From: Heterodontus francisci
Taxonomy: Eukaryota
Direction of reading: 5' to 3'
NCBI RefSeq assembly: GCF_036365525.1
Contig: NC_090409.1
Span: 31,382,437-31,446,436 of the forward strand
DNA: 64,000 nt
Position numbers and translations under genes: made by a program
The notes under the pieces: model-generated
Database searches by the model: none
Told to the model about the DNA's origin: nothing
What the model saw: the letters and a program-made list of their open reading frames with translations, nothing else
Part shown: positions 8,697-63,489 of the stretch, piece after piece
How positions within the stretch are numbered: position 1 is the stretch's first letter
Layout: each line of letters begins with the position of its first letter

Positions 8697-8734
8697 TTGT
8701 GGAGAACATCCCCGCCAGTGTGGAAATGAATGAG
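8697..8734 (+). CDS. Gene A penultimate (cytoplasmic) exon, (x)VENIPASVEMNE
   Basis: Pyrimidine tract + tttag acceptor and GAG|gtacgt donor; 38 nt, phase 1->0. Same phase and similar size as gene B exon 7 (41 nt); joins in frame to the 9543 exon. Confidence 0.7.
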
Positions 8735-8963
8735 GTACGTGCTTCTAAAATATTTTCATCTGACAGTAAGGTATGACGGAGTCTATTACCAGTTTGAGTG
8801 CGGATTAAAACAATAAGCTACTGATGCTGTAATTTGTTAACAAGAGGGACGGCACTTGAAAATTTGAGGGATGAAACTAGCTTTTGGCTTTTGTCATGTT
8901 TGATTCTGGCTGATCAGTGGTGCAAGTGTTAAGGATTTTCCATTGAGCTTAGCTGTGTCATTC

Positions 8964-9330
8964 TTGGCTCAGTCAGCAGCCCCCTCACCTCTAAATCATA
9001 TGTTTCTGCGGTCAGATTCTCCTCCTGGGCTTGAGCATGAAAGTCAAGGCTGACACTTCAATGTAACACTGAAAGAGTGCTGCACTGTTGGAGGTGCTGT
9101 CTTTCAGGTGTGACTTTATACCAGGGTGCAGCCTGTTCTCTCAGGTGGTCACAGTAGATCCCATGGCCTCTATTCTGAAGGAAAGCATCGGATTTGAGTC
9201 CAGGACAATGTTTTGCCCGCAATGCATATCGCCATCGCGGGCTATCTGGTTGTTATCGATTTGCTGCCACCTTTATTCCATCGCTACAGTGACCACACTT
9301 CCTTGGCTGTACAAAGATGTGGGGTGTCCT
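8964..9330 (+). mobile_element. Degraded tRNA-derived DeuSINE/SacSINE1-like SINE
   Basis: tggctcagt A-box-like head and gtgctgcactgttggaggtgctgtctttc core shared with the copy at 50150; boundaries approximate. Confidence 0.55.
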
Positions 9331-9542: not shown

Positions 9543-9668
9543 TGTCACCGGGAGATTGTGTATGCATCGCTGAATTTGCACCAGCAAGAAGTAGGAGCTA
9601 CCACAAGGAGAACAGAAGTCCAGCTTGACTCAGAAGGCACTATATATGGCGTTGTCAAACAGAACTAG
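9543..9668 (+). CDS. Gene A terminal exon: CHREIVYASLNLHQQEVGATTRRTEVQLDSEGTIYGVVKQN* (ITIM + ITSM tail)
   Basis: ttccttcaatag acceptor, 42 codons to TAG. IVYASL is identical to the gene B ITIM and TIYGVV fits ITSM TxYxxV. Paralogous to gene B last exon. Confidence 0.85.
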   Translation, partial: CHREIVYASLNLHQQEVGATTRRTEVQLDSEGTIYGVVKQN

Positions 9669-14360: not shown

Positions 14361-15813
14361 GCCAGGTATATGATATATAGACGGGGAGATACATGATAGA
14401 TGATAGACAGATGACACAGAGGTGTAGGTAGATTGACTGACGAGTAATTAAGCAGAATGAATCATACCTCTGTAGTTCACGAGATACCGACTGTTCCCCT
14501 AAGTTCAGACCCTGTGAGAAGTGGTCACAATGAGTGAGATTTGCACTTGAAATAGTATGCGTGTTCCACTTACCATGTAAGTATAGTTCAAGTTAGATAA
14601 ATCCTGGAACATAAAGTTCAGACAGTTTACTACAGGTACGTTCAGAAATTGGCATCGACAGAAAGGAAAAGACAAGCGGGCAATGTATCCATGGAAACAG
14701 ACACGTAAAATGTGGCCAACACTTCAACCGTTCATCAGCTTCAACTGACAGTAAATAACAGGTGAGATCATTGAATCTTGAAATCACACAGCACTGACGT
14801 GTGCTTGTCAGCCCATCGAGCCTGTGCTAGCTTTTAGGAAGTGTATCCAATTAGTCTCACTCCCCTACTCTTTCTCCAAAGCCTTGCTCATTTTTCCTCT
14901 TGAACTATTTCTCCAATTCCCTTTTGAAAGTTGAATCTGAATCTGCTTCCACCGCCCTTTCAGGAATGCAGGGTTCAGATCTCAACAACATGGTGCTTCG
15001 AGGTAGCTCCCACAACATCTTACTGGCTTGTCTGTCACTTATCTTAATTTAAAGTGAAAGGTTTGATGAGGAGCGTGGGATAAATTAATGCAGGGTTGGA
15101 TTATCTGTTCAATTTTCTGCCTTTGAAGAGGAACGTTAGCAGATGGTCCCTCTGAAAGCATAAAATAGGACACTTGTATCGTTGCACATTCGTGTTCTAC
15201 CTAATGCAAGCCAGGAATACACTGATGTAAGCCAGCTCATCAATCGTGATGCGATGCGCAGACACAAAATATTGCAGATAATGGAAATCCGAAATAAAAG
15301 GGAACAGAAAATGCCAGAAATATTCAGCCGCCCAGGCAGCATCTGTGGAGGGAGCAACACATTTCAGGCCATTCAGCAGAATCGTTACCAACTGTCCAAA
15401 AGATTAGGAGCGGTGCTTATCATTTGGAACTGTTCAGCTCAGTGTTGAGTCCAAAAAGGTTCTAAATTGCCTAATGGAAAAATGAGGTGCTGTTCCCCGA
15501 GCTTACACTGAGCTTCATTCCAGCAGTGGAGGAGGCCGAGGGTAGAGAGATCAGAGCGGGAGTGGGGTGGAGAATTAAAATGACAGGCCAACAGGAAGCT
15601 CAGGACTGAACGTGGGTGTTGTCGGTGTCGTGAGCAGCGGAAACCAATATGCTAAATAGAAAGTAACTGATCGGGCGGAAAGTGAAAGCGTGAGATGAGA
15701 AGAGTCAGGAAGCTGAATGATGCAGTGGTATGACTAGTAAAGAGCTGCAATGTGTTGAAAGGCCTGTACTTGTGTATGTATTTGATTTCTCCTTTCACTT
15801 TGCAATAGCTTAC

Positions 15814-15949
15814 CTGCTGATTTGTATTGTACTGATCAATAGAACGATGAGAAACACAACAAGAGCAATTGGCTCTTAATCAACTCCTAATACTACACAT
15901 GGGATGATTATGTATCTCTCTGAATTCTTGGCCGGGTCTGCAGGAACAC
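15814..15949 (-). pseudogene. Possible decayed transmembrane exon of an antisense receptor gene: (G)VPADPAKNSERYIIIPCVVLGVD*EPIALVVFLIVLLISTIQIS
   Basis: Minus-strand ctcctaatcttttctccag acceptor and CAG|gtaagc donor flank a 136-nt hydrophobic reading frame with one in-frame TAA. Confidence 0.4.
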
Positions 15950-18529: not shown

Positions 18530-21512
18530 TGAGACAATGAGGACAGCTAGTGAAATAAATGAGGAGGACATAATAAATACAGCGAGTAAGACTGAGAGGA
18601 AGAGCAGGCAGGGAGATGTTGCAGAGCACAGCGGGACTGGTGGTCTGAAGTGCATTTGTTTCAATGCGAGAAGTATAACAGGTAAGGCAGATGAACTTAG
18701 AGCTTGGATTAGTACTTGGAAATATGATGTTGTTGCTATTACAGAGACTTGGTTGAAGGAAGGGCAGGATTGGCAGCTAAATGTTCCAGGCTTTAGAAGC
18801 TTCAAAAAAGGATAGAGGGGGATGTAAAAGAGGTGGAGGAGTTGCATTAATGGTTAAGGAGAATATCACAGCTGTACTGCGGGAGGACACCTCAGAGGGG
18901 TCATGCAGCGAGGCAATATGGGTGGAGCTCAAGAATAGGAAGGGTGCAGTCACGATGTTGGGGGTTTACTACAGGCCTCCCAACAGCCAGTGGGAGGTAG
19001 AGGAGCAGATATGTAGACAGATTTTGGAAAGATGTAAAGGTAACAGGGTTGTGGTGGTGGGTGATTTTAACTTCCCTGATATTGACTGGGACTCACTTAG
19101 TGCTAGGGGCTTGGATGGGCAGAATTTGTGAGGAGCATCCAGGAGGGCTTCTTGAAACAGTATGTAGATAGTCCAACTAGGGATGTGGCCATTCTGGACC
19201 TGGTATTGGGGAATGAGCCCGGCCAGGTGGTCGAAGTTTCAGTGGGGGAGCATTTCGGGACCAGTGACCATAATTCCATAAGTTTTAAGGTACTTGTGGA
19301 TAAGGATAAGAGTCGTACTCGGGTGAAGGTGCTACATTGGGGGAAGGCTAATTATAACAATATTAGGCAGGAACTGAAGAATTTAGATTGGGGGCGGCTG
19401 TTTGATGGTAAATAAACATCTGACATGTGGGAGTCTTTCAAACGTCAGCTGATTAGAATCCAGGACCAGCATGTTCCTGTGAGGAAGAAAGACAAGTTTG
19501 GCAAGTTTCGGGAAGCTTGGATATCATGGGGTATTGTGAGCCTCGTCAAAAAGAAAAAGGAAGCATTTATAAGGGCTGGAAGGCTAGGAACAGATGAAGC
19601 ACTTGAGGAATATAAAGACAGTAGGAAGGAACTTAAGCAAGGAGGTAGGAGGGCTAAAAGGGGTCATGAAAAGTCATTGGCAAACAGGATTAAGGAAAAT
19701 CCCAAGGCTTTTTATACATATATAAAGAGCAAGAGGGTAACCAGGGAAAGGGTTGGCCCACTCAAGGACAGAGATGGGAATCTATGTGTGGAGCCAGAGG
19801 AAATGGGCAAGGTGTTAAATGAGTACTTTGAATCAGTATTCACCAAAGAGAAGGACTTGGTGGATGATGAGCCAAGGGAAGGGAGTGCAGATAGTCTCAG
19901 TCATCTCAGTATCAAAAAGGAGGAGGTGTTGGGTGTCTTGCAAAGCATTAAGGTAGATAAGTCCCCAGGGCCTGATGGGATCTAAGCTAGAATACTGAGG
20001 GAGTTAAAGGAAGAAATTGCTGGGGCCTTGACAGAAATCTTTGCATCCTCATTGGCTACAGGTGAGGTCCCAGAGGACTGGAGACCAACAATGTTGTTCC
20101 TTTGTTTAAGAAGGGTAGCAAGGATAATCCAGGAAATTATAGGCCGGTGAGCCTTACGTCAGTGGTAGGGAAACTATTAGAGAGGATTATTCAGGACAGG
20201 ACTTACTCCCATTTCGAAGCAAATGAACTTATTAGCGAGAGACAGCATGATTTTGTGAAGGGGAGGTCGTGTCTCACTAATTTGATTGAGTTTTTTGAGG
20301 AAGTGACGAAGATGCTTGATGAAGGAAGGGCAGTGGATGTTATCTATATGGACTTTAGTAAAGCCTTTGACAAGGTCCAGCATGGCAGACTGGTACAAAA
20401 GGTGAAGTCACATGGGATCAGAGGTGAGCTGGCAAGATGGATACAGAACTGGCTCGGTCATAGAGGACAGAGGGTAGCAGTGGAAGGGTGCTTTTCTGAA
20501 TGGAGGGCTGTGACTAGTGGTGTTCCGCAGGGATCAGTGCTGGGACCTTTGCTGTTTGTAGTATATATAAATGATTTGGAGGAAAATGTAGCTGGTCTGA
20601 TTAGTAAGTTTGCGGACAACACAAAGGTTGGTGGAGTTGCAGATAGTGATGAGGATTGTCAGAGGACACAGCAGGATATAGATCGGTTGGAGACTTGGGC
20701 GGAGAAATGGCAGAGTTTAATCCGGACAAATGTGAGGTAATGCATTTTGGAAGGTCTAATGCAGGTGGGAGGGATACAGTAAATGGCAGAACCCTTAGGA
20801 GTATTGACAGGCAGAGAGATCTGGGCGTACAGGTCCACAGGTCACTGAAAGTGGCAACGCAGGTGGATAAGGTAGTCAAGAAGGCATACGGCATGCTTGC
20901 CTTCATTGGTCGGGGCATAGAGTATAAAAATTGGCAAGTCATGTTGCAGCTGTACAGAACCTTAGTTAGGCAACACTTAGAATATTGCGTGCAATTCTGG
21001 TCGCTACACTACCAGAAGGACGTGGAGGCTTTGGAGAGGGTACAGAGGAGGTTTACCAGGATGATGCCTGCATCAGCTATGAGGAGAGGTTGGAAAAACT
21101 CGGATTGTTTTCACTGGAATGACGGAGGTGGAGGGGCGACATGATAACGGTTTACAAAGTTATGAGCAGCATGGACAGAGTGGATTGTCAGAAGCTTTTT
21201 CCCAGGGTGGAAGAGTCAGTTACTAGGGGACATAGGTTTAAGGTGAGAGGGGCAAAGTTTAGAGGGGATGTGCGAGGCAAGTTTTTTACACAGAGGGTGG
21301 TGAGTGCCTGGAACTTGCTGCCAGGGGAGGTGGCGGAAGCAGATACGATAGCGACGTTTAAGAGGCGTCTTGACAAATACATGAATAGGAAGGGAGTAGA
21401 GGGATATGGGCCCCAGAAGTGAAGAAGGTGTTTGTTTAGCCAGGCATCAAGATCGGCGCAGGCTTGGAGGGCCGAATGGCCTGTTCCTGTGCTGTACTGT
21501 TCTTTGTTCTTT
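18530..21512 (+). mobile_element. CR1 LINE, near-full ORF2 (APE endonuclease + RT) broken by frameshifts and stops
   Basis: CFNARSI, ITETWL, YRPP, GDFN, SDHN (APE); NYRPVSLTS, YMDFSKAFDKV, GVPQGSVLGP, KFADNT (RT); 3' UTR ending in (gttcttt)n. Confidence 0.95.
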
Positions 21513-28000: not shown

Positions 28001-28901
28001 TGCGGGAAAACACCTTTGACCACCGGTCCATCAGGCAGTGGTCTGCATGGAATGTCCTCAAGGCCCTACGGGAAAAGGGGACAGTGGATCCTGTCAGATG
28101 GTTCCCCGAGCAGACCGTCAAAGTCATTTGGCGGAATGCCTCTTCACCAGAACTTTCAAACAAGCACCAAGACGTAGCTTGGCTGGTGGTGAGAAGGGCC
28201 CTCCCGGTCAGATCCTTCATGCACACCCGAAGTCTCGCCCCCTCCGCACAGTGCCCCCGCATTGGCTGTGGTGGGGAAGAGACGGTTGCCCACCTCCTCC
28301 TGGAATGTGTCTTCGCAAAGCAGGTGTGGAAAGAGATGCAGTGGTTTTTGTCAAGGTTCATCCCAAGCAGCTCTGTAACACAGGAGTCTGTGCTCTACGG
28401 GCTGTTCCCAGGGACGCACACCGAGACAAACATCAACTGCTGCTGGAGGACTATCAATTCGGTGAAAGACGCCCTTTGGTCTGCCCAAAACTTGCTGGTC
28501 TTCCAGCGCAAAGAGTTGTCCACCACCGAATGTTGCAGACTGGCACATTCCAAGGTCCAGGACTACGTGCTGAGGGACGCACTAAAGCTTGGGGCAGCCG
28601 CAGCAAAGGCTCAATGGGGAAAGACCACAGTGTAAGGTTCCCCCACCAAGCTGGACTGAGGGGCTGGATCCATGGGAAACCCCTCGAACTGTATCGTTAA
28701 TATTCTCAATTGCTGTAAATGTAAAACTGTAATTGACATGACAATTGTGAAACGGAAGGGTTGGGAAGAAACTCATGACAGTATTGAAGAAAACTGATCT
28801 CCCTTGCAATGTTTGTATTTTTTGGTGCTGTTTGGAAACTGTTTGGCAATGTAATTTTTACAGATTTTTATGAATAAAGTATATTTTGGAAATAAAAAAA
28901 A
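28001..28901 (+). mobile_element. Tx1/L1-clade LINE, 5'-truncated 3' end (copy 1)
   Basis: ORF2 C-terminus with zf-RVT motif CPRIGC-GGEETVAHLLLEC, 3' UTR with AATAAA and poly(A); flanked by AACACTGTTC. Confidence 0.9.
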
Positions 28902-28911
28902 AACACTGTTC

Positions 28912-37358: not shown

Positions 37359-37407
37359 ATGACTTTATTGGTTTGGATTTCTTCTGCATGCATTGCTCTT
37401 CTCTCTG
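37359..37407 (+). CDS. Gene B exon 1, signal peptide MTLLVWISSACIALLS
   Basis: First ATG after an in-frame stop; hydrophobic; G|gtaagt donor; 49 nt, same length as the gene C leader exon. Confidence 0.75.
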
Positions 37408-47300: not shown

Positions 47301-50300
47301 TGAGTGTGTTGACTGTTTCTAGACATCTATGAATCCAGTATTTCTGGGAGGTTTAATATGACTGGTTTTAATTGCCGTCCCTCTATTTGTCAACTCCTTC
47401 TGAATACATTTAATAAGCCCTAAATCAATTAATTCTTCAGGGGTTCAGATTTATGGAAGCTTGCATTCTTTTAATAAGGTGAAGATTAGATGACTTGCTC
47501 CCGGTAATTCTGGGTCATTTTAACTTTGAACGGGAGCGCTGCGTGGGACGTGAAGGTTGCTATATAAATGCAAGTTGTTGTTATCTTGCAAAATGGACGC
47601 TGTCGCATGGGCCGGCCGTTGTGCGTCCTGCCCAATCCTGCTTTCCACTGAAGTCGTTGGTTGCGGCAAAGGGCGGAAGCTGCCGATTGGCCAAGTTTTT
47701 GCACGACCGCTCAATGCAAGCTTCGTCTCCTCAGGGTCTTTGCTGAGGCACTTTGTGTTGGCTAATTATCCTGAGAGAAGCTACATGACCCCACTTCTGA
47801 CTTCAGTTAGCAGAACACCCAGCAGATTCCATGGTATGAATAGAACTGTCGCACGTTTTCTTTGCCATTTTCGTTCATGGTCCATCCAACATTAAAGCCA
47901 AACAATGGGATTCCGTATTTGGACGGCCCATAGTTTACTGCCATTGTGGTCGTTTGCCTTATATTCCGATTGATTTAAATTTGATTATCTGATACGTTGG
48001 ATGCACTGACTACATGAGCCCAACCATTTTCCTCTATAGATCCACCGGAAGTGACCATAACAGGGTATGATGGGAATTGGAGTGAAAATACAAGGGATGT
48101 TTCCCTCGAATGTGTCGCCAATGCCAATCCCCCAGCAACAAATTACTCTTGGCAAGGGTAAATAAGTGTTGGATTTATTAAGGATTTCATTGTGTACATT
48201 TTCAAAAAGGGTACAGACAATGGATGGCTGAGATAATTGTATGTTTTCAGCCCCTTTGCGATGTGGTTGTTCAACTGAGAAAAGAAAACTATGAAAATTG
48301 TTGACTTATCACTATTCAGGGCAACGTTTGCGAAAATGTGTTGGAAAAACACAGGGAAATTCAGGACGTTAAGCAGAGCGAGCTTTTCAAGACAGGGGAA
48401 CCTTCCCTCTTAATCAAGGTAGTACGAACGGAGAAAGGGAGATTTGGTGTGTGTAAGATAATCGGGCACGCACTTTGTTTTTTAATGAAGGAGGCTATGG
48501 GGGTAATTTTAATTAACCCGGTTTAGCGGGAAACTAATGTGTTTGGGTTGAACACAGGTTTTGCACCCTGTCTGAGACTATGGAGAGTAAAATCGAGCGG
48601 GATCTGAACCCGCCGGTTTCCCGCCCTGTGATTGGGTTAAAATTGCCCTAGCGTCTCCTAATAGGTAGTGCACAGAGTTTGGACCAAGCAGCCGGAATAA
48701 TTTTAAGCTTTTTTTGTTGGGGTGGGGGAGGTGGTGCAGAGTGGAGGCGATGGTGTGAAACAGGCAATATGGAACTGGTCGTCCCATTATACACCGCGCC
48801 TGATATTCCTCACCAATGCACTCAGTGGAAGCTGCAATCCGCAGGAGCCTATAATGGGTGGCCAACTCTATACAGACCAAAGTTCAAACTACCCAACTTA
48901 AGATAGTCACCAAGACATATCTAAAATGTGAATTTATCAAGATTACCTTCGTTTGCCTGTTTTCCAAGATTACCAGAAAGACTACAGACTGAAAATGCTA
49001 AAATATACATCAAGAAAGTGAGCAGTCTTATGAATGGAAACTGGACCTGCGAAGCGACCAATTCCGTTGGGACAGGGAAGAGTGAAGTGGAGATAATATT
49101 CCTAGAAGCCAGCAATGCAGGTACATGTTAATGAACTGCAGTGAAAAGCGCCGGATTCATTCCATTTTGTGAATTAAAGCAAAGGAGGCGGCTTTTCATG
49201 AAAGATTCGGCCAGAAATCGTTGAATTTGGCGAATGAGCTCACTTTGGAACGGCTGGAGGTCACGAAAGGCGCCATATAAAGGCAATTCCTTCATTCCAA
49301 TGGATGAATGAGCCACAGACTGGTACAGGAGGATACCTTTTTCCTTCAGCTACCATTTCTCCACATTCAGTCAGTCTGGGTGCGGTTGCTTCATTTGCTG
49401 TTGTAACTTTTGGCCGGCCTGAATAGTTAAGTGTGTAACAATGTGAAAGTCTTTTCCCAACGCCCTATATTTTGCCAAAGGGAAGACAAAAGCCGATTTT
49501 GCTGCTCGCATGCCTCCCATTGCAGGGTTGTTTGGGCGTAGCGAGTACAATAGACCATTTTGAGAGCACACCGCATGTATCCCTTCAGGCAATCTAATCC
49601 CATTGATTATATCATGCTGAACTGCCTGCCCTAGCTATCAGGACCAGTAGGAAAATAATTAATTCGGAATTGAATCTTGAATGAATGACATTGCTGTTGT
49701 ACTTCCACATTGATTCATTCCTGTTTGAGGTTCTCCTTGTTCAATGCTAATGACATCTCCCACCAAGAGTGGCTATCAACCTGGAGAGAGAGGCGGTGAC
49801 ACAATAATTTCTGCTCCCAATAAATTTAATGAACCTACATAACATATCCCTATGCTTAGATTTCTATTTTGAATTGCACATTACATATTCCTTTCAAATG
49901 TATTTTCCCAGATGAAAATTTAAGCAAGATCCACATCATCATAGTAGTCGCTGTTATTGTGTGTGTTGTAAGTGTGCCGACCCTGACGTTAACGTGGAGG
50001 AAGAGACGAATTCAAGGTAAGTGTCAAGAAACAGTCCAGAAAGTGACCCTATATATGTCACGGGAAGACGAGTAACTCGAACACAATTTTGACCGGCGTT
50101 ATTGCATTGGCCGCCTGTTACAGGCCGCCCTTGATAGGCCTTGGAGCCTGCTGTGGCTCAGTTGGTACCTCTCTCACCTCTGAGTCACCAGTTGCCAGGC
50201 TCACGTCCCATTCCAGGGGGCGGGAGCACAGAAGTCGAGGCTGTACACTCCAGTGCTGAGGGAGCGCTGCACTGCCGGAGGTGCTGCCTTTCCGATGAGG

Positions 50301-51731
50301 CAATAAACAGAGGCTCCTCTGCCTGCTTGGGTGGAGGTAAAGGATCCCAAGGCACTATTTCGAGGAAGAACAGTGGAGTTCTCCCCGGTGTCCTGTTAGA
50401 TATTCTCCACTCAGCCAGCCTCACAATAAAGCAGCTTAGCTGGTCATTATCACATTGCTGTTTGTGGGAGCTTGCTGTGCACACAATGGCTGCCGCCTTT
50501 CCTGCTTTCCAACTGACTGCACTTGGAAAACAGGTGCCGCAAAGCACTTGGAGACGTTCGGTGGTCGGGAAAGGCGCTATATAAATGCAAGCTACTGGAA
50601 TTGCTTATCAGGAGGGGTGTATATTGACCAGTCAATTGGACAACCTCTGAAATGAATGTCGACCCCTTATATCTGCAGGATTGTGAAACCTTGTTGATTT
50701 TGACAGGGAAGGGATGGTATTCACACAAAGAGCGGTTGTTAAGTAAACCTCATTTCCAAATGAAATGGGACTATTTTGACTGTCTCGTTTGGCAAATTTT
50801 CGATTAATCACTTCACATTATGCTGTTCTTCCAATTTCACAGAAGCAGTTGTTTACCATAACGTCAATAGCTCCCAAACTCTGGTAAGTTAAATCCAAAG
50901 TTTATCTTTCCAGTTTCCATTGTCATCCCATTGTTCCAAATGATTGGCGCTTTTTTTTTTTGGGTGTACATTGTGACCTGTATTCCTGGATATTTAGCAT
51001 CGACTGGAAGGAGGGCAGAAAGGAAAACCAGAAGTGGATGCCCTGGGATTTCCTTTTGCCTCAATTCAATGGCAGGAACAGCAGCAAGTTCTGTTCCAGG
51101 TTTTATCATGGGCCCAAGCAGTATTTCCTCTGTGCTTTTATGCAGGCGATGCTTTACACTCAAGTGCAAACGTCCACAATATACCCCGTTTAAGCATACC
51201 ATTTCATACAGATGCACTTTGGATCCGCCTCTGCATCTCGAGTCTAAAACCAAAGGGCGGGATTTTCCGAACGGTAGGCTTGTTGGAAAGCTGAGTGCAT
51301 TTATGGCACTGGGTGGAAAGCCACTGGAAGCGGTTTTCCCACAAGCCACGCCACGTTCAGGAAATTCAGCCCATAACCAGCGAATTGCATGGACGGAGCG
51401 TCCGTCCAATGAATGGAATATCGGGCGCCCCCCGGGCGATTGCGCCCGTTTTGAACTGGCCCCAGGGTGGATTTCCAGCCGGTTATTTGCCTCTTTTTCA
51501 AGCACTTGACCCATGTCCTGTGGGTTTCTGACAATTTCTGCTGTTGTTTCAAGTGACCTCTGCCCTTACTGGTCTGAAATAGAAGTTTGACAACATGCTT
51601 TCTCCCCACCACAGGAAGAACAGAGGATTGTTTATGCGTCGCTGGATTTCAATGTACCGGCGAAGCATTTTGCTGCCCAAAGGGAAGAGGAGAGAACGGT
51701 GTACGCAGATGTCAAATACAGCCAGAGTTAA
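37359..51731 (+). CDS. Gene B (spliced, 8 exons, 1215 nt, 404 aa): nectin/PVR-like three-Ig-domain receptor with ITIM/ITSM cytoplasmic tail
   Basis: Exons 37359-37407, 45894-46232, 46911-47204, 48040-48157, 48969-49120, 49912-50016, 50843-50883, 51615-51731. All introns GT-AG, phases 1,1,1,2,1,1,0 compatible, open frame throughout. Confidence 0.9.
38262..38321. repeat. (ATCT)n microsatellite
   Basis: Directly visible. Confidence 0.95.
38745..43437 (-). mobile_element. CR1/L2-group LINE (RT + 3' end), split by a nested CR1; pieces 38745-39495 and 43055-43437
   Basis: VPQGSVLDP..FINDL..MFADD..QQDLDNIQA | WADKWQV joins cleanly when the insert is removed. Confidence 0.85.
39496..43054 (+). mobile_element. 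Young CR1 LINE: ORF1 SGNH-esterase part + ORF2 (APE + RT) + 3' UTR/poly(A), with AAGCC target-site duplication
   Basis: GDS / PGA / HIGTND / DGLH esterase blocks; APE motifs; 542-aa RT ORF with FADD; AAGCC at 39491-39495 and 43055-43059. Confidence 0.95.
45894..46232 (+). CDS. Gene B exon 2, IgV domain
   Basis: LPC..FVQLSW..VVYNPWYG..RI.F..DGSI.IKSL..QDGGYYSC.LALFPQG; ctcacag acceptor, G|gtatgt donor; 339 nt. Confidence 0.93.
46911..47204 (+). CDS. Gene B exon 3, second Ig (C-type) domain
   Basis: VANCTSTNGKPAANITW..NGTITVTSQY..VACAISH nectin D2 pattern; cccaag acceptor, T|gtaagt donor; 294 nt. Confidence 0.93.
48040..48157 (+). CDS. Gene B exon 4, first half of third Ig domain (YPPEVTITGYDGNWSENTRDVSLECVANANPPATNYSWQG)
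   Basis: Hallmark nectin/PVR D3 start YPPEV.I.GYD.NW; 118 nt, phase 1->2. Confidence 0.93.
48500..48648. mobile_element. Small MITE-like element with terminal inverted repeats
   Basis: ggggtaattttaa ... ttaaaattgccc termini. Confidence 0.5.
48969..49120 (+). CDS. Gene B exon 5, second half of third Ig domain
   Basis: LPERLQTENAKIYIKKVSSLMNGNWTCEATNSVGTGKSEVEI; 152 nt, phase 2->1. Confidence 0.92.
49912..50016 (+). CDS. Gene B exon 6, transmembrane (DENLSKIHIIIVVAVIVCVVSVPTLTLTWRKRRIQ)
   Basis: Hydrophobic run followed by basic RKRR; ttttcccag acceptor and G|gtaagt donor. Confidence 0.9.
50150..50592 (+). mobile_element. DeuSINE/SacSINE1-like SINE
   Basis: tRNA-like head ctgtggctcagttggt, conserved core, and tail ggcgctatataaatgcaag. 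Confidence 0.7.
50843..50883 (+). CDS. Gene B exon 7, cytoplasmic (EAVVYHNVNSSQTL)
   Basis: ttcacag acceptor and CTG|gtaagt donor; 41 nt, phase 1->0, needed to join exon 6 to exon 8. Confidence 0.8.
51615..51731 (+). CDS. Gene B exon 8, terminal: EEQRIVYASLDFNVPAKHFAAQREEERTVYADVKYSQS* (ITIM + ITSM)
   Basis: ccaccacag acceptor, 39 codons to TAA; paralogous to the gene A terminal exon. Confidence 0.88.
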   Translation, partial: EEQRIVYASLDFNVPAKHFAAQREEERTVYADVKYSQS

Positions 51732-51827
51732 TTTCGCTTCACTTCCTGAAATGCAATGGACATGAAACTGCTGTTGCATCACATGTGCAGTGAAGTCAAA
51801 GGGTACCATGTGTTTTCATGTTAATAC

Positions 51828-52502: not shown

Positions 52503-54295
52503 CCATCTCCCCACCAGGATGGTTTGAGGGCTCTCCGCTTCTTCCTTGAGCAGAGGCCCAACCAGTCCCCATCCACCACCACCCTCCTCCGCCTGGCTGA
52601 ACTTGTTCTCACATTGAACAACTTCTCCTTCAACTCCTCGCACTTCCTTCATGTAAAAGGTGTTGCTATGGGTACCCATATGGGTCCTAGTTGTGCCTGT
52701 CTTTTTGTGGGATATGTCGAACATTCCTTGTTCCAGTCCTACTCAGGTCCCCTCTCCCCAACTGTTTTTCCGGTACATTGATGACTGTATTGGTGCCGTT
52801 TCCTGATCCCGCCCCAAACCGGAAAACTTTATCAACTTTGCTTCTAATTTCCACCCTTCTCTCACCTTTACATGGTCCAACTCCGACACTTCCCTTCCCT
52901 TCCTCCCCTTCTCTGTCTCCATCTCCGGGGATAGGCTGTCTACTAATATCCATTATCAGCCCACCGACTCCCACAGCTACCTCGACTGCACTTCTTCACA
53001 CCCTGCCTCCTGTACAGACTCCATTCCATTCTCCCAGTTTCTCCATCTCCGACGCATCTGCTCTGATGATGCTACCTTCCATGACGGTGCTTCTGATATG
53101 TCTTCCTTTTTCCTCAACCGAGGATTCACCCACACTGTTGTTGACAGGGCCCTCAACCGTGTCTGGCCCATTTCCCGTACCTCTGCCCTCAACACTTCCC
53201 CTCCCTCCTAGAACTGTGACAGGGTTCTCCTTGCCCTCACTTTCCACCCCATCAGCCTCCATATCCAAAGGATCATCCTCTGCCATTTCCGCCACCTCCA
53301 GCATGATGCCACTACCAAACGCATTTTCCCCTCCCTTCCCCTGTCAGCATTCCGAAGGGATCATTCCCTCGGCGACACCCTGGTCCACTCCTCCATTACC
53401 CCAACCACCTCATCCCTGTCCCATGGCACCTTCCCCTGCAATCGCAGGAGATGTAATACCTGCCCATTTACCTCCTCTCTCCTCACTATCCCAGGCCCCA
53501 AACACTCCTTTCAGGTGAAGCAGCGATTTACTTGTACTTCTTTCAATGTCGTATACTGTATTCACTGCTCACAATGTGGTCTCTGCTACATTGGGGAGAC
53601 CAAACGCAGACTGGGTGACTGCTTTGCGGAACACCTCCGCTTAGTCTGAAAGCACGACCCCAAGCTTCCATTTGCTTGCCATTTCAACACTCCCCCCTTG
53701 CTCTCATGCTCACATCTCTGTCCTGGGACTTCTGCAGTATTCCAGTGAACATCAACACAAGCTCGAGGAACAGCATCTCATTTACCGATTAGGCACACTA
53801 CAACCTGCCGGACTAAACATTGAGTTCAATCATTTCAGAACATGACTCCACCACCACCAACCCCCCACCCCTCCCCCCCCCCCCCCCCCACAATTTTACT
53901 TTCTATTTTTAGTTATTTTTTCTTCTTTGTATTTTTTTTTGTTTATTTTATTTTATTTTATCTTAGTTTGTTCAGTTTGCTTACCCACTGTTTTTTTCAT
54001 GTTTGTACTTGCTGCTGTTCAATTTTCAGTCCGTTAACACCCTATCTGTACTTTGTCTTTCAACACCATTAACATATTGTTTGCCTTTGCTCCCTGACCT
54101 TCTGGTCAGCCCTCTGTGACCTTGTCCTATTTACACCTTCTCCTTTGTTATCTCTTGCCCCACCCCCAACTTTACTTGCTTATAACCTTTCACATTTCTA
54201 ATATTTGTCAGTTCTGACCTGAAACGTTAACTCTGCTTCTCTCTCCACAGATGCTGCCAGACCTGGTGAGTATTTCCAGCATCTCTTGTTTTTAT
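52503..54295 (+). mobile_element. Penelope-like retroelement (RT + GIY-YIG endonuclease), degraded
   Basis: LTLNNFSFN..GVAMGTHMGPS, RYIDD and VYCIHCSQCGLCYIGETKRRLGDCFAEH (GIY-YIG). Confidence 0.9.
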
Positions 54296-54559
54296 TACCG
54301 ACGATCTTCCGCCAAACACTCCCCAGCGGTTACTTTGAGAATTGCAGATACATATGAACAAACAGGGGAGTTGGAAGGAGTTAACAATATTAATAGTATG
54401 AATTGGCTGCCGGATGTCATAGTTTAAAATTAATTGACAACTACGCGGAGACAGGCACAATAATAATTCCTATCAAATAGAGGCAAGCCGGTTTAGCAAT
54501 CTTCCGCTGATTTCCGGTCCCTATGTCGGTGCTAACCAATTTCAATCGACATACGAATA

Positions 54560-55295: not shown

Positions 55296-55344
55296 ATGAG
55301 TGTAGTTGCCCTTGTTTCGTTTCTCCAACTCGTTCTTTCCCCAG
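55296..55344 (+). CDS. Gene C exon 1, signal peptide MSVVALVSFLQLVLSP
   Basis: 49 nt, G|gtaggt donor, hydrophobic. Confidence 0.72.
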
Positions 55345-58300
55345 GTAGGTTTGGTTGGCGCAAGTTAGCATTCCTGTTAGTCCACACACGAACTAGCTCG
55401 TTCACACCTGCAACCACAGGTGAATCTTGAGATATTGCCCCCTTGAAGGTGTCCTTCGTTACTTTCAGCCCATTGTTTGGGAGGTCGAAGTGCATTCGTT
55501 TCCAGGTATCTCACTATTCCGTTCCTGTATCATTCTAAAGGTGGACAGTAGTAGTAAATATTAATTGGTTGTGGACATACAACCTATTTGATAGAAGAGG
55601 TGTGATAACTTGGAAGGCTAGTTGTTGGCGAACCAATATTATGAATCAATATTGGTATATCTCCACTCCCTCTCATGGTTGCTAATTTATATGTTTATCT
55701 ATATGTGTGAGTGTGTATGTTAGTTGATATTTGTAAATCGGGGTAAAATGTACTGTTGGGGATCTGGGCCTTGGTTGCTGACTTTTCTATACTTTCCTCT
55801 CGTGTTGTATTGCACTGAGTTGTATTGCACTGTGCAGTCACAGTTCACTGCCGGCCAAACCACGCCATAATGGTTAAAATGAATAAAATCTTCTCAGTGC
55901 CTCAAGCTAGAAAACCTCCAGGCTATTGGTGGCACACGGTCAAATTTTGACCATTGTGTGTGATATGTTACCGCCCCAGATCTGAACCAATTGACAAATA
56001 TAGCAAGGTCACTCATTCAAATGGAGGCGCTCATTAATGATGTGTTTGGAGGCAGCTCTGAAGACCACTGCTGTGAACTTGTTCCACACCGTTTGTTGAA
56101 ACCGTCCTCTTTGCAGATGTTACTGCTTCTTGGCCTAATCACCTGGGCACCAACCTTGTGAACAGTTGGCCAGCCAATGTAGCTCAAGTACCTTGTCATG
56201 GCTTTGCAAGGCCCAGGGAAATACCTCAAAGACACCTGGTTGCCAATTTCTGATACTGCTGATTTATATCAGTACTGGGCGGCCATGGCAAATGCCACGT
56301 TTCCGACATAATACCAGTGACTAATGATTCAGACAACAGTGCATTGGCCCTAAAGCGTTTTGGGACTACCCAAAGCTGTAGGTNNNNNNNNNNNNNNNNN
56401 NNNNNNNNNNNNNNNNNNNNNNNNNNNNNNNNNNNNNNNNNNNNNNNNNNNNNNNNNNNNNNNNNNNNNNNNNNNNNNNNNNNNNNNNNNNNNNNNNNNN
56501 NNNNNNNNNNNNNNNNNNNNNNNNNNNNNNNNNNNNNNNNNNNNNNNNNNNNNNNNNNNNNNNNNNNNNNNNNNNNNNNNNNNNNNNNNNNNNNNNNNNN
56601 NNNNNNNNNNNNNNNNNNNNNNNNNNNNNNNNNNNNNNNNNNNNNNNNNNNNNNNNNNNNNNNNNNNNNNNNNNNNNNNNNNNNNNNNNNNNNNNNNNNN
56701 NNNNNNNNNNNNNNNNNNNNNNNNNNNNNNNNNNNNNNNNNNNNNNNNNNNNNNNNNNNNNNNNNNNNNNNNNNNNNNNNNNNNNNNNNNNNNNNNNNNN
56801 NNNNNNNNNNNNNNNNNNNNNNNNNNNNNNNNNNNNNNNNNNNNNNNNNNNNNNNNNNNNNNNNNNNNNNNNNNNNNNNNNNNNNNNNNNNNNNNNNNNN
56901 NNNNNNNNNNNNNNNNNNNNNNNNNNNNNNNNNNNNNNNNNNNNNNNNNNNNNNNNNNNNNNNNNNNNNNNNNNNNNNNNNNNNNTTTAGTCTCCACAGT
57001 CATCTAATTCCATGTTGAAGCAGATGCGAAGGGCACTTTGGGCCGTTCTGATCTTTCTTTAACGTCAGCAGTATCCCAATAATCTTGTGCTAGATAACAT
57101 ATGTGCCCAGTAGCTCGGCCTCCTGCTTTATAACTCTTCATCGAGCGATGGATGGGCTTCCTCCCGCCCGGGTGTGAGATGTGGGGCCAGACTGTGAGGC
57201 AGATGTGCACAGGATGTGAAGCAGCTGCAGCGAAGGAGGTTTCTAACCCGCTATTTGAGTATCCTGAAAGGACAGTCGGCCTCATGGTTTGTGGCTTTGT
57301 CAAAGACCCTATCATGAGAAGGTAGATTAAGCTGCCTGTTGAGGTCGCTTTGTGGCAGGGGACATGGCTGTTTAGAACATCATTGGGGCTGACATGGCCC
57401 AAACTTGTGTCAGTTCGGTTCGCCGTGCCGAAAATGGGTATCCCTCATAAAGTCGAGAATGTACTGAGATTTGGGACGATTCCGACTGGATTGTGTTCCT
57501 TCAAGGCCAAGTATGAGATCATGCTCCACATGACCATGACTAGCATGGTTGGGAGGGCGGAGTTGTCGGCAATTATGAATGAAGCTTTGCTTCTCCGACT
57601 GGGGCCTGGGGGGTGGGGGTTAATCTTTGATGCCCATTCACAGGTAACGCCATGAGTGAACACATTAATAGATAGGGTTGTGGAGGAAGCATAAACATTC
57701 TGAAGCTCAGCAGCATTAGTGGGGTAAATCCCATCAGAATGACCTGCCTTTCTTCTTAACTGACATCCGGACACGACAGCCTTCTCATCCGGACACGGTT
57801 CACCACCGAGTCACTTTCTCCTCTTGTCCTATCCCTGCAGTTGTGGTAACGCAGAAGATTAAAGTCGACAGTTCTGTAACGGGGAACGCCGGTGAAGAAT
57901 TGATGCTGCCTTGCCATTTTATCAACAATGACTCCAACCTCACAGTCGTTCAAGTGACCTGGCTGAAGAAAGCTGAGGCAGAGAATGAAAACCTGGCAGT
58001 GTACAACCCACACTTTGGGACAAGTTACCCAGCGACAACAGGAAGGATCACCTTCAACAATGCAAATTCTCAAAACTGCACTTTAGCAATAAACCCCTTG
58101 GAGTTGGATGACGAAGGCCTCTACAGTTGCGAAGTCAACGTTTTCCCCACTGGAAAACAAGAATCCCAAACAAACTTGACAGTTCTGGGTAGGTAATAAT
58201 ATAATTGTTATAAAATCTTAGCTTGGCCCGGCTTTGGGTCAGTGGCAATATTTTTGCCTCTGGGTCAGGAAAGCTTTGCTTCAATAATGAATGTGGTCGC

Positions 58301-61300
58301 CTCTGCATTGGGGAAACCCAACGTAGATTGGGTGAATGCTTTGCGAAACACCCCTGCCCAGTCTGAAAGCAAAGAAACCGAGCTTCTGGTTGCTTGCCAT
58401 TTCAACTGATCACCCTGCTCCCGTACCCACGTTTCTGTCCTTGGCCAGCTGAAGTGTTCCAGTGAACATCAATGCAAGCTTGAGGAACAGCATCTCATTT
58501 ACTGATTAGGCACTCTACAGCCTGCTGGGCTGAACATTGAGTTCAACAGTTCCGGAGCATGACAGCCTTTATTTATTAATTGTTTTTTTAAGTTGTTTTA
58601 TTTTATTTTTTAACTATGTGCCTGCCTTAAACTTGATTTTGCATGTTGTCCTTTTGGACAGAGCGACTCATTGTTCCGCCATTAATACTGTCTCTGGACC
58701 AATGCTTTGTCTTTCACCACACGCATCAGCACTCTCTTTGTTTTTGTCCCACGACATCTTTGTTATTTAATCTCTTCTGCCTTCTACCCTATCACACACC
58801 TTCCCTTTTGTTCTCTTCCCCACAGCCCCACCCCACCTTCACTTCACTTAAAACCTAAGACTTGTCTAACTTTTGCCAGCTCTGATGAAAGGTCACGGAC
58901 CTGAAATGTTAACTCTGCTTCTCTCTCCACAGATGCTGCCAGACCTGCTGAGTATTGCCAGCACTGTCTGTTTTCATTTCAGATTTCCAGCATCTGCAGT
59001 ATTTTGCTTTTATATTCCAACATTGCCGCACACTCCGATCCAGTGACCGAATCAAATCTACCAAGGTCACTCTTCAATGCAGTAATTCATTGACAAAGAA
59101 AGAGACTGCATCCATACAGCGCCTGGTACGACCTCAGGACGCACTGTGCTTTTGGAAGTGTGGGCACTTTTGCAATATAGGCGAGGGGGATGGTCAATTT
59201 GTGCACAGCATGATCTCACAAACTGCAATATTAAAATGAGCAGATAATCTGCTTTTGTGATACTGATTAGAAACACAGAAAATAGGAGCAGGAGTAGGCC
59301 GTTCGGCCCTTCGAGTCTACTCCGCCATTCATTATGATCATGGCTGATCATCCAACTCAGTAACTTGTTCCCGCTTTCGCCCCCTACCCTTTGATCCCTT
59401 TAGACCCAAGAGCTATATCTAACTCCTTCTTGAAAACATACAATGTTTTGGCCTCAGCTGCTTTCTGTGGTAGCGAATTCCACAGGCTCAGCACTCTCTG
59501 GGTGAAGACATTTCTTTATCTCAGTCCTGAAAGGTTTACCCCGTATCCTTAGACTATGACCCCTGGTTCTGGACTCCTCCACCATCGGGAACATCCTTCC
59601 TGCATTCACCCTGTCAAGTCCTGTTAGAATTTTATAGGTTTCTATGAGATTCCCCCCTCACTCTTCTGAACTCCAGCGAATATAATCCTATCCGACTCAA
59701 TCTGTCCTCATACGTCAGTCCTGCTATCCCAGGAATCAGTCTGGTAATTCTTCGCTGCACTCCCTCTATAGCAACTAACCTGTCAAACGCTACAATCTCG
59801 GTGCCAGGTATGGTTCCATTGGTAGCACTCCCAGCTCTGAGTTACAATGGAATCAAGTTGCAATGACTTGGGCAGAAGTATCTAGGGTGACATGTCTCCA
59901 AGATGCCCCCGGCAATATTTACCACACAATGATAGAGGCTTCAGGGGTGATTCCTTCCTCAGATAAGGAGACCAAAACTGCACACAATATTCCAGGTGTG
60001 GCCTCACCGAGGCCCTGTATAATTACAGCAAGACATCCCTGCTCCTGTACTCGAATCCTCTCTCTATGAAGGCCAACATACTATTCGCCAATTTACCGCC
60101 TGTTGCACCTGCATGCTTACCTTCAGCGACTGGTGTACGAGAACACCCAGGTCTCGCTGCATAGTCCCCTCTCTCAGTTTATAGCCATTCAGATAATAAT
60201 CTGCCTTCCTGTTTTAGCTGCCAAAGTGGATAACCTCACATTTATCCACATTATACTGCATCTGCCATGCATTAGCCCACTCTCTCAACTTCTGGCCAAG
60301 TCATTGCAACTTTTTGATTCCATTGTAACTCAGAGACGGGAGTGCTACCAACGGAGCCATACTTGGCTCTGAGATTGTAGAGTTTGGTAGGTTAATGATT
60401 TGTGCTTTACTCCAATTTGCCTATGTTTAGGCTCAACTGTAACTGTTGGTATAATGGGAGTTTCTTGAGCCTATTTTGTATTGAAGCAGAGAATTACTAT
60501 TATAAGTTGTGTCATAGAATTAAAGCTTCCACTCATCACATGCAAATCTCTGATCCTTAGCCAAGCCCATGAATGGTGCAGTCGCAGTCCCAGCAGAGGC
60601 TGGCTTGTCAGAGACGTCAATCGCCAGCTGCACAGCAGCGAATGGGAAACCGGCAGCTGTTGTAACATGGATTGCAAAAGTCGCCGGAAAAGTCACGTCA
60701 ACTCGGATTGAAAATCCAAACAGGACAGTCACCGTCATCAGCCAATACAGGATTGTACCCACTAGAAAGGACAATGGGGAGAATGTGACATGCGTCGTGT
60801 CCCACAAAGCATTATCAGATCGAGTGAGCTTACCAGTGACATTATCAGTCCGATGTAAGTACTACAGGAGGAAGTTGGACTAAACAGCAAATCAAGTGAA
60901 AGTGCAAGATTAATGTATTAACTGCATGACTGAACCATTGAATAGAGCATAGTCCCACTGTAAATACGACGAGATGCATTTTTGGCACATTCTTTACTTG
61001 TTATATTAGTCACCAGTAGAATTTTCCCATTGACCATATAACACATCTCATACACATTCCACAGTTCCAAATGCTTGGAATACTCAAAGGAAGCAATGGT
61101 GCCCAAGAGCCCTAGCGTCCTGGAGATATTACGGCAAAGAATGAGGCCATTTGGGCCCATCAAATCCAAGCTGGCTCTCTATAGAGCAATGCAATCAATG
61201 TTATTCTGCCGCTCTCTTCTCACAACCCTGCAAGTTTATTTCCCCCCCAGTGCTCATTCAATTTCCTTTTGAAATCATATCTCCACTTCCACCCCCGTGG

Positions 61301-63489
61301 TGGGCAGCGAATTCCAGGTCATTACCACGAGCTGCTTAAGAAAGATCTTCCTCAAATCCCCTCTGCATCTCTAGCCCAAAACTTTCAATCTGTGTCCCCT
61401 AGTCCTTGTACCATCAGCTAATGGGAATGGTATTTCTTTGTCTACCTTATTCAAACCTGTCAGAATCTTGTACACCTCTATCAAATCTCCCCTCAATCTC
61501 CTTTGCACCAAGGAGAACAACCCCAGCTTCTCCAACCTAACCCTGTAACTAAAACCCCTCATTCCCTGGAACCAATCTGGCAAATCTCCTCTGCACCCTC
61601 TGAAGGACCCCTACATCCTTCCTAAAATGTGGTGACCAGAACTGGACGCAATAATCCAAACCAGATGCCTAACCAGGTGCCTAACCAGAGCTTTGTAAAG
61701 GTTCAGTAAAATGTCCCTGCTTTTTTCCTCAATACCTTTATTTATGACGCCCAAGATCCCATAGGCTTTGCTAACTATTCTCTCAATCTATCCTGACGCT
61801 TTCAAAGATCTATGCACATGAGAACGAAAGAACATAAAAACATAATGACATAAGTAATAAGAGCAGGAGTGGCCATTCGGCCCTTCCAGCCTGCTCTACC
61901 ATTTAATAACATCAATAATATCTATCTTGAATATAATCAACGTTTCAGCATTCACAACTGGTTGTTGCAGAGAATTCCAAAGGTTAACAACCCTTATATA
62001 GATAGACAGATAGACAGATAGATATATGGACAGACGGGTAGATAAATAGACCGAGAGAGAGGCAGATAGATAGAGCTAGAGAGAGATTCTGAAACCGCAA
62101 TTGTTTCTCTGAGGGACATGATAACCGCTTGTCTCCCATGTCCTTGTTTAAAACAGAATGTCACAATTATTATATATTAGTGTTTTTCTTAAATCTAAGA
62201 ATACATACCACAGAAATGAAGGACTGACTATTTCCCCCATTGTAAAATCGTGCAACAATAGAACAACGGAAGTAGTTAAATGTACTACAATTCTATTTAT
62301 TGGTTTGGAAATATACTTGGGCAAACATAATGTTATTTGCAGTTCTGCACAATTCCGTTTCTTGTGCTTTATAAAATTTCTATTCACCAATGGACCTCAT
62401 TATAAAGTGACAATATAGCAAACTTTTCTCTGATCACTTGTAGCAATTTCTTTTCCTGGTTAGATCCACCGGAAGTGACGATTACAGGATATGACGGAAA
62501 CTGGCACCTCAACAGACGCAAGGTGAACCTCAGGTGCATTGTTGAGGCCAATCCTCCAGCAACAAGCTATCGCTGGACAATGTATGTAGGCTTACAATAT
62601 ATGTGATATGACACTGTGTGTAATTGTAAGGTTATATCAGGCATCTAGAGCAGAATGAAAATCCAGTACCTATTGCAAACAGTTAACCCCTCTCATATCC
62701 CAGAGAAATATTTAAAGTCCTCGAACATTCTGCATGAGAAAGTAACAACATTTTTGAAGTTATCTATCCATCAGTTGATCTGTTTCTTTATCTCTCTCTA
62801 CCTCTAAATCTCTCATTATTTTTCTGCCCCTCTCTTTCTATCGATATCTCTGTCCCCGCCTAATCTCTCGCTTGCTCCCTCAACCTCTCTCTCCAAACAG
62901 CTATACATCCCGCACAGGAAAGATTTAGGTATTGAGATTTCAATCAGCCCGCATTACTCAAAACTAATCGTTGTTGAAAGATAGCTGCAGTCCCTCTCCA
63001 GCTAAAGGCAGGTTATTAACTGAGGGCCGTGTCTATTCATCTAGGACCACAGGACCAGTACCTGAAAATGCCCGAGTGGAAGGAAATCATCTATTTATAC
63101 GACAAGTCGATTACTCTGTTAATGGGACGTGGGTCTGTGAAGCAACAAACGCCGTTGGAAAAGGGAAGGGTGAAATTGCAGTTGTAGTGAGGGAAATGGA
63201 CGCACTCAGCGCAGGTACACTTCCACTATGTTATTGTGGTTTAACGGCGATGTTGCTACTACATGGAGACAAGAAGAGGTTTATAATGTTGCATGGACAT
63301 GCTAACGTGCACAAGGATTGATTACTTGCATATGCAATAACATTGAGAATACTTTCTTTGTTCAAATGTTTATAGGCGAGTCCTTTGGATCCACCGTGGT
63401 GTACATTGTCATCGGAACAGTCATTGGGGTCTTGTTCATTGCTGTCTTACTATCCGTTGTGATAGTCAAAAAAAGACGGACAATCGATG
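55296..63489 (+). CDS. Gene C (spliced, 3' end outside window): nectin-1-like three-Ig-domain type I membrane protein
   Basis: Exons 55296-55344, 57841-58188, 60561-60854, 62464-62581, 63045-63214, 63376-63489. All GT-AG, same phases as gene B, open frame. Confidence 0.9.
56384..56985. other. Assembly gap (N run) in gene C intron 1
   Basis: Run of N characters. Confidence 1.
57841..58188 (+). CDS. Gene C exon 2, IgV domain
   Basis: LPC..VVQVTW..AVYNPHFG (A-x6-G)..RITF..DEGLYSCEVNVFPTG; ccctgcag acceptor; 348 nt. Confidence 0.94.
58290..59010 (+). mobile_element. Penelope-derived 3' fragment
   Basis: cattggggaaaccc...gcttgccatttcaac...gaggaacagcatctc, homologous to 53590-54290. Confidence 0.75.
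59270..60290 (-). mobile_element. CR1 3' fragments (with internal insertion)
   Basis: CR1 3' UTR (gaaataggagcaggagtaggcc) and ORF2 C-terminal antisense sequence. Confidence 0.7.
60561..60854 (+). CDS. Gene C exon 3, second Ig domain
   Basis: AKPMN..IASCTAANGKPAAVVTW..ENPNRTVTVISQYRIVPTR..VTCVVSH, close to nectin-1 D2 pattern; 294 nt, as in gene B. Confidence 0.94.
61130..61820 (-). mobile_element. CR1 3' fragment
   Basis: LEKLGLFSLVQRRLRGDLIEVYKIL..TRGH on the minus strand. Confidence 0.8.
62464..62581 (+). CDS. Gene C exon 4 (YPPEVTITGYDGNWHLNRRKVNLRCIVEANPPATSYRWTM)
   Basis: 118 nt, phase 1->2, strongly similar to gene B exon 4. Confidence 0.93.
63045..63214 (+). CDS. Gene C exon 5, second half of third Ig domain
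   Basis: TTGPVPENARVEGNHLFIRQVDYSVNGTWVCEATNAVGKGKGEIAVVVRE; 170 nt, phase 2->1. Confidence 0.92.
63376..63489 (+). CDS. Gene C exon 6, transmembrane (GESFGSTVVYIVIGTVIGVLFIAVLLSVVIVKKRRTID)
   Basis: Hydrophobic helix followed by KKRR; tttatag acceptor and G|gtaagc donor. Confidence 0.92.

Follow-up and report, generated by a model that had tools for sequence, protein, structure and literature searches.

What does a nectin-type ectodomain do when it is joined to a tail that carries the tyrosine motifs of an inhibitory receptor? This question is raised by a 64,000-nt stretch of the Heterodontus francisci genome (the window, meaning the whole stretch analyzed), which carries three adjoining genes of the nectin/PVR family within the immunoglobulin superfamily (IgSF). 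These genes, named A, B, and C, all lie on the + strand. The reading favored here, with a probability of roughly two in three, is that the window is part of a shark-and-ray nectin/PVR cluster in which gene A (single V domain) and gene B (V-C-C) end in a two-exon module containing an immunoreceptor tyrosine-based inhibitory motif (ITIM) and, downstream of it, an immunoreceptor tyrosine-based switch motif (ITSM), and that A and B are candidate inhibitory receptors. A preliminary description of the window had proposed a single inhibitory-receptor family of all three genes; the proposal stands for the tails of A and B and falls for C, whose tail has lost its tyrosines.

Gene models and cytoplasmic tails

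Exons were searched singly, and full-length comparisons used the RefSeq proteins that match the window exons identically, namely P0251 for A, P0001 for B, and P0177 for C. The exons and motifs of the three genes all lie where the preliminary description had placed them, and a splice-site and phase check gave AG/GT at every internal border.

The model of gene B has eight exons that sum to 1215 nt, or 404 codons plus a stop, and agrees in length and sequence with XP_067874875.1 (P0001), which was 100% identical over the V exon in an HMMER search. RefSeq names this protein 'nectin-1-like [Heterodontus francisci]', much as the preliminary description had predicted that automatic annotation would label it 'nectin-like'. 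The coding part of the leader (37359-37407, 49 nt, MTLLVWISSACIALLS) starts with ATG, contains a hydrophobic run, ends at the donor CTG/gtaagt, and equals residues 1-16 of P0001. The V-set exon (45894-46232, 339 nt; Pfam V-set, 3.5e-10; nectin-1 D1 in the PDB, 8e-16) is followed by a second Ig exon (46911-47204, 294 nt; Pfam C2-set_2, 7.4e-20; nectin-1 in the PDB, 3.5e-14) that encodes CTSTNGKP, with NGKP at 46991. The third Ig domain is split into a first half of 118 nt (48040-48157, PPEVTITGYDGNW...ANPP, with ANPP at 48123) and a second half of 152 nt (48969-49120). A stalk and transmembrane (TM) exon, recognized in a hydropathy scan (49912-50016, 105 nt; residues 318-352 of P0001), leads to the cytoplasmic part, which consists of a 41-nt mini exon (50843-50883, AVVYHNVNSSQTL) and the last coding exon (51615-51731, EEQRIVYASLDF...TVYADVKYSQS-stop).

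RNA was aligned to gene B only, over the 6-kb stretch 45800-51799. Contigs from four runs contain six of the seven joints of the gene, which together connect the V exon with the ITIM/ITSM exon and are all consistent with GT..AG (46232/46911, 47204/48040, 48157/48969, 49120/49912, 50016/50843, and 50883/51615). One contig of 1405 nt joins the second half of the third domain, the TM and mini exons, and the ITIM/ITSM exon. Since contigs run through the mini exon into the last exon, the transcript of gene B uses the ITIM/ITSM exon and not an exon with a PDZ-binding end, and the splice check proposed in the preliminary description thus came out in its favor. The joint of leader and V exon lies outside the aligned stretch; the contigs carry 29 nt ahead of the V exon that agree with the terminal part of the leader exon (37359-37407), as judged by the pattern of mismatches against intron sequence. 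At the other end, the contigs continue past the stop codon to 51799, so that the 3′ untranslated region extends beyond this position. Gene B is transcribed and correctly spliced, and its frame is open.

Two further observations concern the introns of gene B. Between the TM and mini exons, positions 50400-50599 show a summed contig depth of 16,000-37,000 with many loose ends in all four runs, and this segment looks like a widely transcribed interspersed repeat, not gene B mRNA. Intron 1 holds a copy of a long interspersed nuclear element (LINE) in sense orientation (40391-42973, + strand), in which two frames are open, over 308 aa and 542 aa (reverse transcriptase).

In six-frame translation, gene B has IVYASL at 51627-51644 and TVYADV at 51696-51713, followed by KYSQS-stop, and gene A has IVYASL at 9555-9572 and TIYGVV at 9639-9656, followed by KQN-stop. 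In both genes IVYASL fits the ITIM consensus [SIVL]xYxx[IVL], and TIYGVV and TVYADV fit the ITSM consensus TxYxx[VI] downstream of it. The translations confirm that the ITIM and ITSM tyrosines are 28 residues apart in A and 23 in B. The mini exon of gene B adds VVYHNV, which fits both the ITIM and a YxN site of the Grb2 type; gene B alone has a tyrosine here, and its paralogues and orthologues have His. No ITIM is found in C of H. francisci.

For gene A, the window holds a 38-nt cytoplasmic mini exon (8697-8734, phase 1 to 0, AG/GT borders, VENIPASVEMNE), which has no tyrosine and is identical to the corresponding residues of P0251, and the last coding exon (9543-9668, CHREIVYASLNL...TIYGVVKQN-stop), identical to the C-terminus of P0251. 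The RefSeq protein of 232 aa consists of a signal peptide, one V domain, and a TM segment, then VENIPASVEMNE joined to CHREIVYASLNL...TIYGVVKQN, with the ectodomain encoded beyond the window. It is named 'myelin protein P0-like X1', although myelin P0, the source of the name, came last (1.8e-4) when the V domain was compared with the PDB by phmmer; nectin-1 came first (2.4e-11), and CD226 and PVR next. No TIGIT chain was among these matches at E up to 1e-3, and the tail has no YxN motif of the kind found in the TIGIT-type immunoglobulin tail tyrosine (ITT)-like site. Because one V domain, a TM segment, and an ITIM/ITSM tail follow one another, the architecture is TIGIT-like and not V-C-C, and gene A is to be classed as a nectin/PVR-family single-V receptor that resembles TIGIT in architecture and not in sequence. 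Its membership in the family, for which the preliminary description had the tail to go by, is thus strengthened by a V domain of nectin/PVR type, while the V-C-C shape does not hold for it.

The isoforms P0251 and P0255 of gene A bear the RefSeq names 'myelin protein P0-like' and 'nectin-3-like protein'. Isoform X2 omits the TM exon and therefore would not be a membrane protein. A 32-bp satellite fills window positions 1-8583 (268 copies, 91% matches, GC skew +0.42); since it lies upstream of the A mini exon, it is probably within an intron of gene A.

Gene C (XP_067874536.1, P0177, 424 aa) begins with a leader of 49 coding nt (55296-55344, MSVVALVSFLQLVLSP; residues 1-16 of P0177). An assembly gap at 56384-56985 lies between this exon and the V-set exon (57841-58188, 348 nt; Pfam V-set, 4.5e-18; AG/GT borders, matching P0177), hence in the first intron, and interrupts no reading frame. 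The second Ig exon (60561-60854, 294 nt; Pfam C2-set_2, 2.1e-17) encodes CTAANGKP, with NGKP at 60641. The first half of the third Ig domain (62464-62581, 118 nt, ANPP at 62547) is supported by the splice-site and phase check and by similarity to the B exon, and the second half (63045-63214, 170 nt, residues 271-327 of P0177) by a phase-consistent acceptor and donor. The TM exon (63376-63489, 114 nt) passed the same splice-site and phase check, and the remaining gene lies beyond the window. The common plan of B and C (leader, V, C, split C, and TM), with 49-, 294-, and 118-nt exons equal in size and phase, is as the preliminary description had given it. Identity between the two genes is 36% in V, 48% in C1, 70% in the first half of the third domain, and 41% in its second half, values that mark B and C as diverged paralogues.

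The tail of gene C, encoded by the exons beyond the window and seen in P0177, reads ITVFATLNL...ATINADV, with both tyrosines lost, and ends TSSVK. C-type tails of sharks and rays (P0177, P0176, P0180, and P0191-P0201) keep the flanks of the motifs and have F, H, or L at the first site and N, H, V, or C at the second; among them only that of Heptranchias retains both tyrosines. It seems likely that C-type genes lost the tyrosines several times independently. Because C has lost both tyrosines, only A and B remain candidate inhibitory receptors, and gene C is most likely a non-signaling ligand or adhesion partner.

The tyrosine motifs might instead be chance matches, or be left in genes that are decaying, and have no role in signaling. 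Both consensus sequences are short and degenerate, and gene C and a minus-strand relic of the family elsewhere in the window are without tyrosines. Against such an explanation stand the transcript of gene B, correctly spliced and open in frame as described above, and the retention of both tyrosines, with flanking residues and spacing, in A- and B-type genes across shark orders. The lineages compared have been separate for more than 200 million years. The B-type consensus [IT][VT]YA[SATV]L plus T[VL]YA[DG][VI] is kept in seven genera: Heterodontus (in two paralogue types), Heptranchias, Pristiophorus, Cetorhinus, Carcharodon, Scyliorhinus, and Stegostoma. For the A-type tail, conservation extends to Heptranchias and Pristiophorus; the A-type portion of the Heptranchias protein P0002 has a tail that shares 51% identity with that of gene A. 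These tails show the two tyrosine motifs to be conserved across shark orders, and chance or decay is a very improbable account of them.

P0002 (XP_067831298, 'nectin-2-like' in RefSeq) is A-type over its first 240 residues and B-type over the remainder. Judged by this composition, it is a read-through model that fuses an A-type single-V gene and a B-type gene, and the order of A followed by B is therefore common to two shark orders. The record that carries the canonical Heptranchias nectin P0114 is equal in size (15.7 Mb) to that of P0002 and is presumably the same one.

A second kind of tail occurs within the B clade. Six sampled species have B-clade proteins that end in YxNV ... SVYxE[IL], an arrangement that recalls the ITT-like site plus ITIM of TIGIT. 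In Pristiophorus, Cetorhinus, and Stegostoma at least, a protein with this tail pairs with an ITIM/ITSM form of nearly identical ectodomain; the two may be separate genes or alternative ends of one. The Pfam family SIT was considered as a homologue of the tails and rejected, as the Heptranchias B tail scored 30.4 bits and the Heterodontus tail gave no match.

Kinship with the nectins and PVR

In full-length phmmer comparisons with the PDB, B matched nectin-1 (3.8e-58), PVR (9e-49), nectin-3 (1.2e-47), and nectin-2 (2.4e-41), and C matched nectin-1 (7.2e-78), nectin-2 (1.1e-63), PVR (2.1e-56), and nectin-3 (4.4e-56). Both have a V-C2-C2 ectodomain and a single TM segment, unlike A with its single V. 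The V domains of the PVR family carry the signature (V/I)(S/T)Q, AX6G, and T(F/Y)P. The corresponding residues are VVD, AVYSPIHG, and TFP in A; VVQ, AVYNPHFG, and VFP in C; and VTQ, AVHNPQLG, and TYP in the canonical shark nectin P0114.

B and C share with nectin-1 to nectin-4 the three-domain plan and the hallmarks CxxxNGKP and YPPEV..GYD.NW...ANPP. They differ from these nectins in forming a clade of their own, and A, B, and C all have short tails and none has the afadin-binding end E/A-x-Y-V, as their C-termini read VKQN, KYSQS, and TSSVK, respectively. Canonical nectins of sharks and rays occur separately and end AVYV or GMYV (AVYV, EWYV, or GMYV among canonical relatives overall), and B and C are about 39-45% identical to one of them, P0114.

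A word-based homologue search with B found 'nectin-1-like' relatives of B type in eleven shark genera and matched sharks only, which may reflect the limited sensitivity of such a search. The same kind of search found C-type relatives in sharks and in the rays and skates Pristis, Hemitrygon, Mobula, Rhinoraja, and Narcine. Heterodontus itself has at least two more B-type genes on the same chromosome and copies on two unplaced scaffolds. With these additional B-type copies and the B- and C-type relatives, the genes belong to a multi-copy family, as the preliminary description had expected.

A maximum-likelihood tree was built from 44 ectodomains; CD96, CD226, TIGIT, PVRIG, and the human nectins were compared through PDB matches only. 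In this tree the sequences of B type (99/100) and of C type (85/99) each form a clade of sharks and rays only, and the two clades are sister to each other (83/96). The nectin-1 clade (100/99) joins nectin-3 (99/100), with B+C outside. B+C also falls outside a weakly supported assemblage (83/86) that unites nectin-2 of tetrapods and teleosts with bat PVR and the canonical nectins of sharks and rays; within it, bat PVR pairs with mammalian (rodent) nectin-2 (100/100). When bat PVR was constrained to group with B+C, the cost was 104 log-likelihood units and the approximately unbiased test rejected the arrangement (p-AU 3e-56), the group having been named after the tree was seen. B and C thus appear as a separate shark-and-ray clade, outside the nectin-1, nectin-3, and nectin-2/PVR clades, and not as 1:1 orthologues of nectin-1, -2, -3, or PVR; 1:1 orthology with a canonical nectin was among the results that the preliminary description had named as refuting its proposal.

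Several points weigh against a separate family of candidate inhibitory receptors. The branching order of the three groups (B+C, nectin-1/nectin-3, and nectin-2/PVR) is not settled by the tree, the tree sample is without a canonical shark or ray nectin-1, and holding nectin-1 together with B+C is not rejected (p-AU 0.06). The V signature is kept only in part by gene B, which has FVQ, VVYNPWYG in place of AX6G, and LFP in place of TFP. The RNA evidence comes from four runs of one sample and consists of assembled contigs, not reads. Finally, a language-model search for look-alikes of the B TM segment and tail returned LST1 and C1orf162 at 0.79-0.80, below threshold, and these candidates were set aside.

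The unrejected grouping with nectin-1 bears directly on the idea that B and C simply correspond, as orthologues in sharks and rays, to a canonical nectin (nectin-1) or to PVR, with the ITIM exon as a minor alternative ending. The RefSeq name 'nectin-1-like' and the rank of nectin-1 as best solved relative of both proteins agree with this idea. It is countered by the ends of the transcripts and proteins, since the ITIM/ITSM exon comes last in all RNA contigs and in every RefSeq isoform read for B and its paralogues in Heterodontus, and none of them has E/A-x-Y-V at the end. In addition, the paralogous clades B and C are both old and have several copies in each genome, bat PVR is rejected as their companion in the constrained tree, and nectin-1 is reported separately in the elephant shark, a chimaera, in passages of a nectin survey (PMC7286890). 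Simple orthology is, on balance, highly unlikely.

Inhibitory signaling or adhesion

The module at the end of A and B suggests how such receptors would act. By analogy with known receptors, the V domain would bind another nectin-family molecule in trans, and a Src-family kinase would then phosphorylate the tyrosines of the tail. The phosphotyrosine pair, 23-28 residues apart, would dock the tandem SH2 domains of SHP-1 or SHP-2 in a bidentate manner, and the docked phosphatase would damp signaling or adhesion, as in CD155, TIGIT, PD-1, PECAM-1, CEACAM1, and BTLA. This spacing is within the range of PD-1, PECAM-1, BTLA, and CEACAM1. In these receptors and in the CD33-type Siglecs, an ITIM is followed about 18-30 residues on by an ITSM near the C-terminus, and A and B have the same order of motifs with spacings of 28 and 23. 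Their ectodomains are unrelated or only distantly related to those of PD-1, BTLA, PECAM-1, CEACAM1, and the Siglecs, however, and the likeness is one of motif pattern. A 'checkpoint-like' use of A and B in immunity is an inference from this likeness.

Known single-V receptors of the PVR family with ITIMs include TIGIT and PVRIG. Gene A resembles them in having one PVR-family V domain that keeps AX6G and TFP, a TM segment, and an ITIM tail; it differs from TIGIT in that its tail is ITIM plus ITSM and not ITT-like site plus ITIM. The TIGIT/CD96/CD226 group has been placed at Amniota (PMC13262535). Gene B resembles PVR (CD155), against whose human form it scores 170 bits, in joining a V-C-C ectodomain to an ITIM tail. 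PVR has one ITIM and no ITSM, whereas the tails of A and B have both. The combination of a ligand-type ectodomain and a receptor-type tail, which the preliminary description had inferred for these genes, is therefore not new in itself, as passages of the nectin survey already describe PVR as a V-C-C molecule with a short tail, an ITIM, and no afadin-binding end (PMC7286890). The same passages place PVR in placental mammals only and mention extra 'nectin-1-like' proteins in non-mammals, whose tails they do not discuss (PMC7286890). Since PVR pairs with nectin-2 in the tree and is rejected with B+C, the shark tails would be an independent or a far older acquisition.

The main rival holds that the genes encode adhesion molecules of non-immune tissues, in which the ITIM and ITSM serve SHP-2-dependent control of adhesion or migration, as in CD155 (Necl-5), PECAM-1, and CEACAM1. 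CD155 recruits SHP-2. It is presented mainly as an adhesion and migration molecule with one ITIM (PMC7286890). The runs that supplied gene B RNA carry no tissue label, and C scores 266 bits against human nectin-1, close to the canonical shark and ray nectins P0138 (264 bits) and P0114 (257 bits). On the other side stand the multi-copy family with fast-evolving V domains, the single-V members, and the same-species forms that combine near-identical ectodomains with different tails; these are traits of immune clusters and not proof of an immune role. A purely adhesive function is possible but on the unlikely side.

The rates of change of the V domains bear on the division of labor between B and C. 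The V domain of B, with 53-57% identity between shark orders, is less conserved than the other Ig domains of the protein in comparisons with its paralogue and with three of four orthologues. For the V domain of C, by contrast, Heterodontus shares 77-79% identity with Heptranchias or Pristiophorus. A slow V in C and a fast V in B are as expected for a ligand or adhesion molecule and a receptor, respectively. The rates, which come from a comparison of identities and not from a selection test, thus agree with B being a receptor that diversifies and C a ligand or adhesion molecule under constraint.

A more far-reaching and doubtful extension is that sharks and rays evolved a nectin-family receptor-ligand axis of their own, independent of TIGIT/CD96/CD226-CD155, composed of fast-evolving inhibitory receptors (A and B), partners that in several species combine an almost identical ectodomain with a YxNV-type tail, and a slow C-type partner whose tyrosines were repeatedly disarmed. 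If this were so, a PVR-like immune brake would date to the base of the jawed vertebrates or would have arisen twice. More generally, a shark-and-ray clade with ITIM plus ITSM that includes a single-V member suggests that inhibitory signaling in the nectin family is far older, or had a parallel origin.

The literature searched held no description of an ITIM/ITSM nectin family in sharks. What was already known is that the genes are in RefSeq, under uninformative or wrong names, and that CD155 joins a nectin-type ectodomain to an ITIM. What is new is the separate shark and ray clade, the combination of nectin-type ectodomains with a tandem ITIM and ITSM, the existence of alternative tails, and the finding that C-type genes have lost their tyrosines repeatedly. 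The names 'nectin-1-like' and 'myelin protein P0-like' conceal the signaling tails, and the A/B/C clade offers concrete genes for studies of natural killer cell or T-cell regulation in cartilaginous fish.

Other elements of the window

The relic mentioned above (14467-15911, - strand) comprises the decayed remains of a TM exon and of YxNV-type tail exons from a member of the family. When the tails of shark paralogues served as tblastn queries, its matches in the window reached E values as low as 6.7e-4, which is weak evidence. Its translations read IIIPCVVLGVD-stop-EPIALVVFLIVLLI, PSANVPLQRQKIEQ, and GLNLGEQSVSRELQR; a stop interrupts the frame, and every tyrosine position is occupied by another residue. 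The minus strand of the window showed no V or C exons that would belong to it.

A repeat that translates to TDAARPAEYF... has copies at 33837-33881, 54238-54303, and 58920-58973 on the + strand and at 15182-15361 on the - strand. In RefSeq isoforms of B paralogues (P0238 and P0004), it matches 24 residues inserted behind the leader, which suggests that the insert is an exonized repeat. A further LINE copy (18537-21422, + strand) is split over several frames, and a tandem pair of almost identical open frames (183-184 aa) occupies 28084-28635 and 28992-29546.

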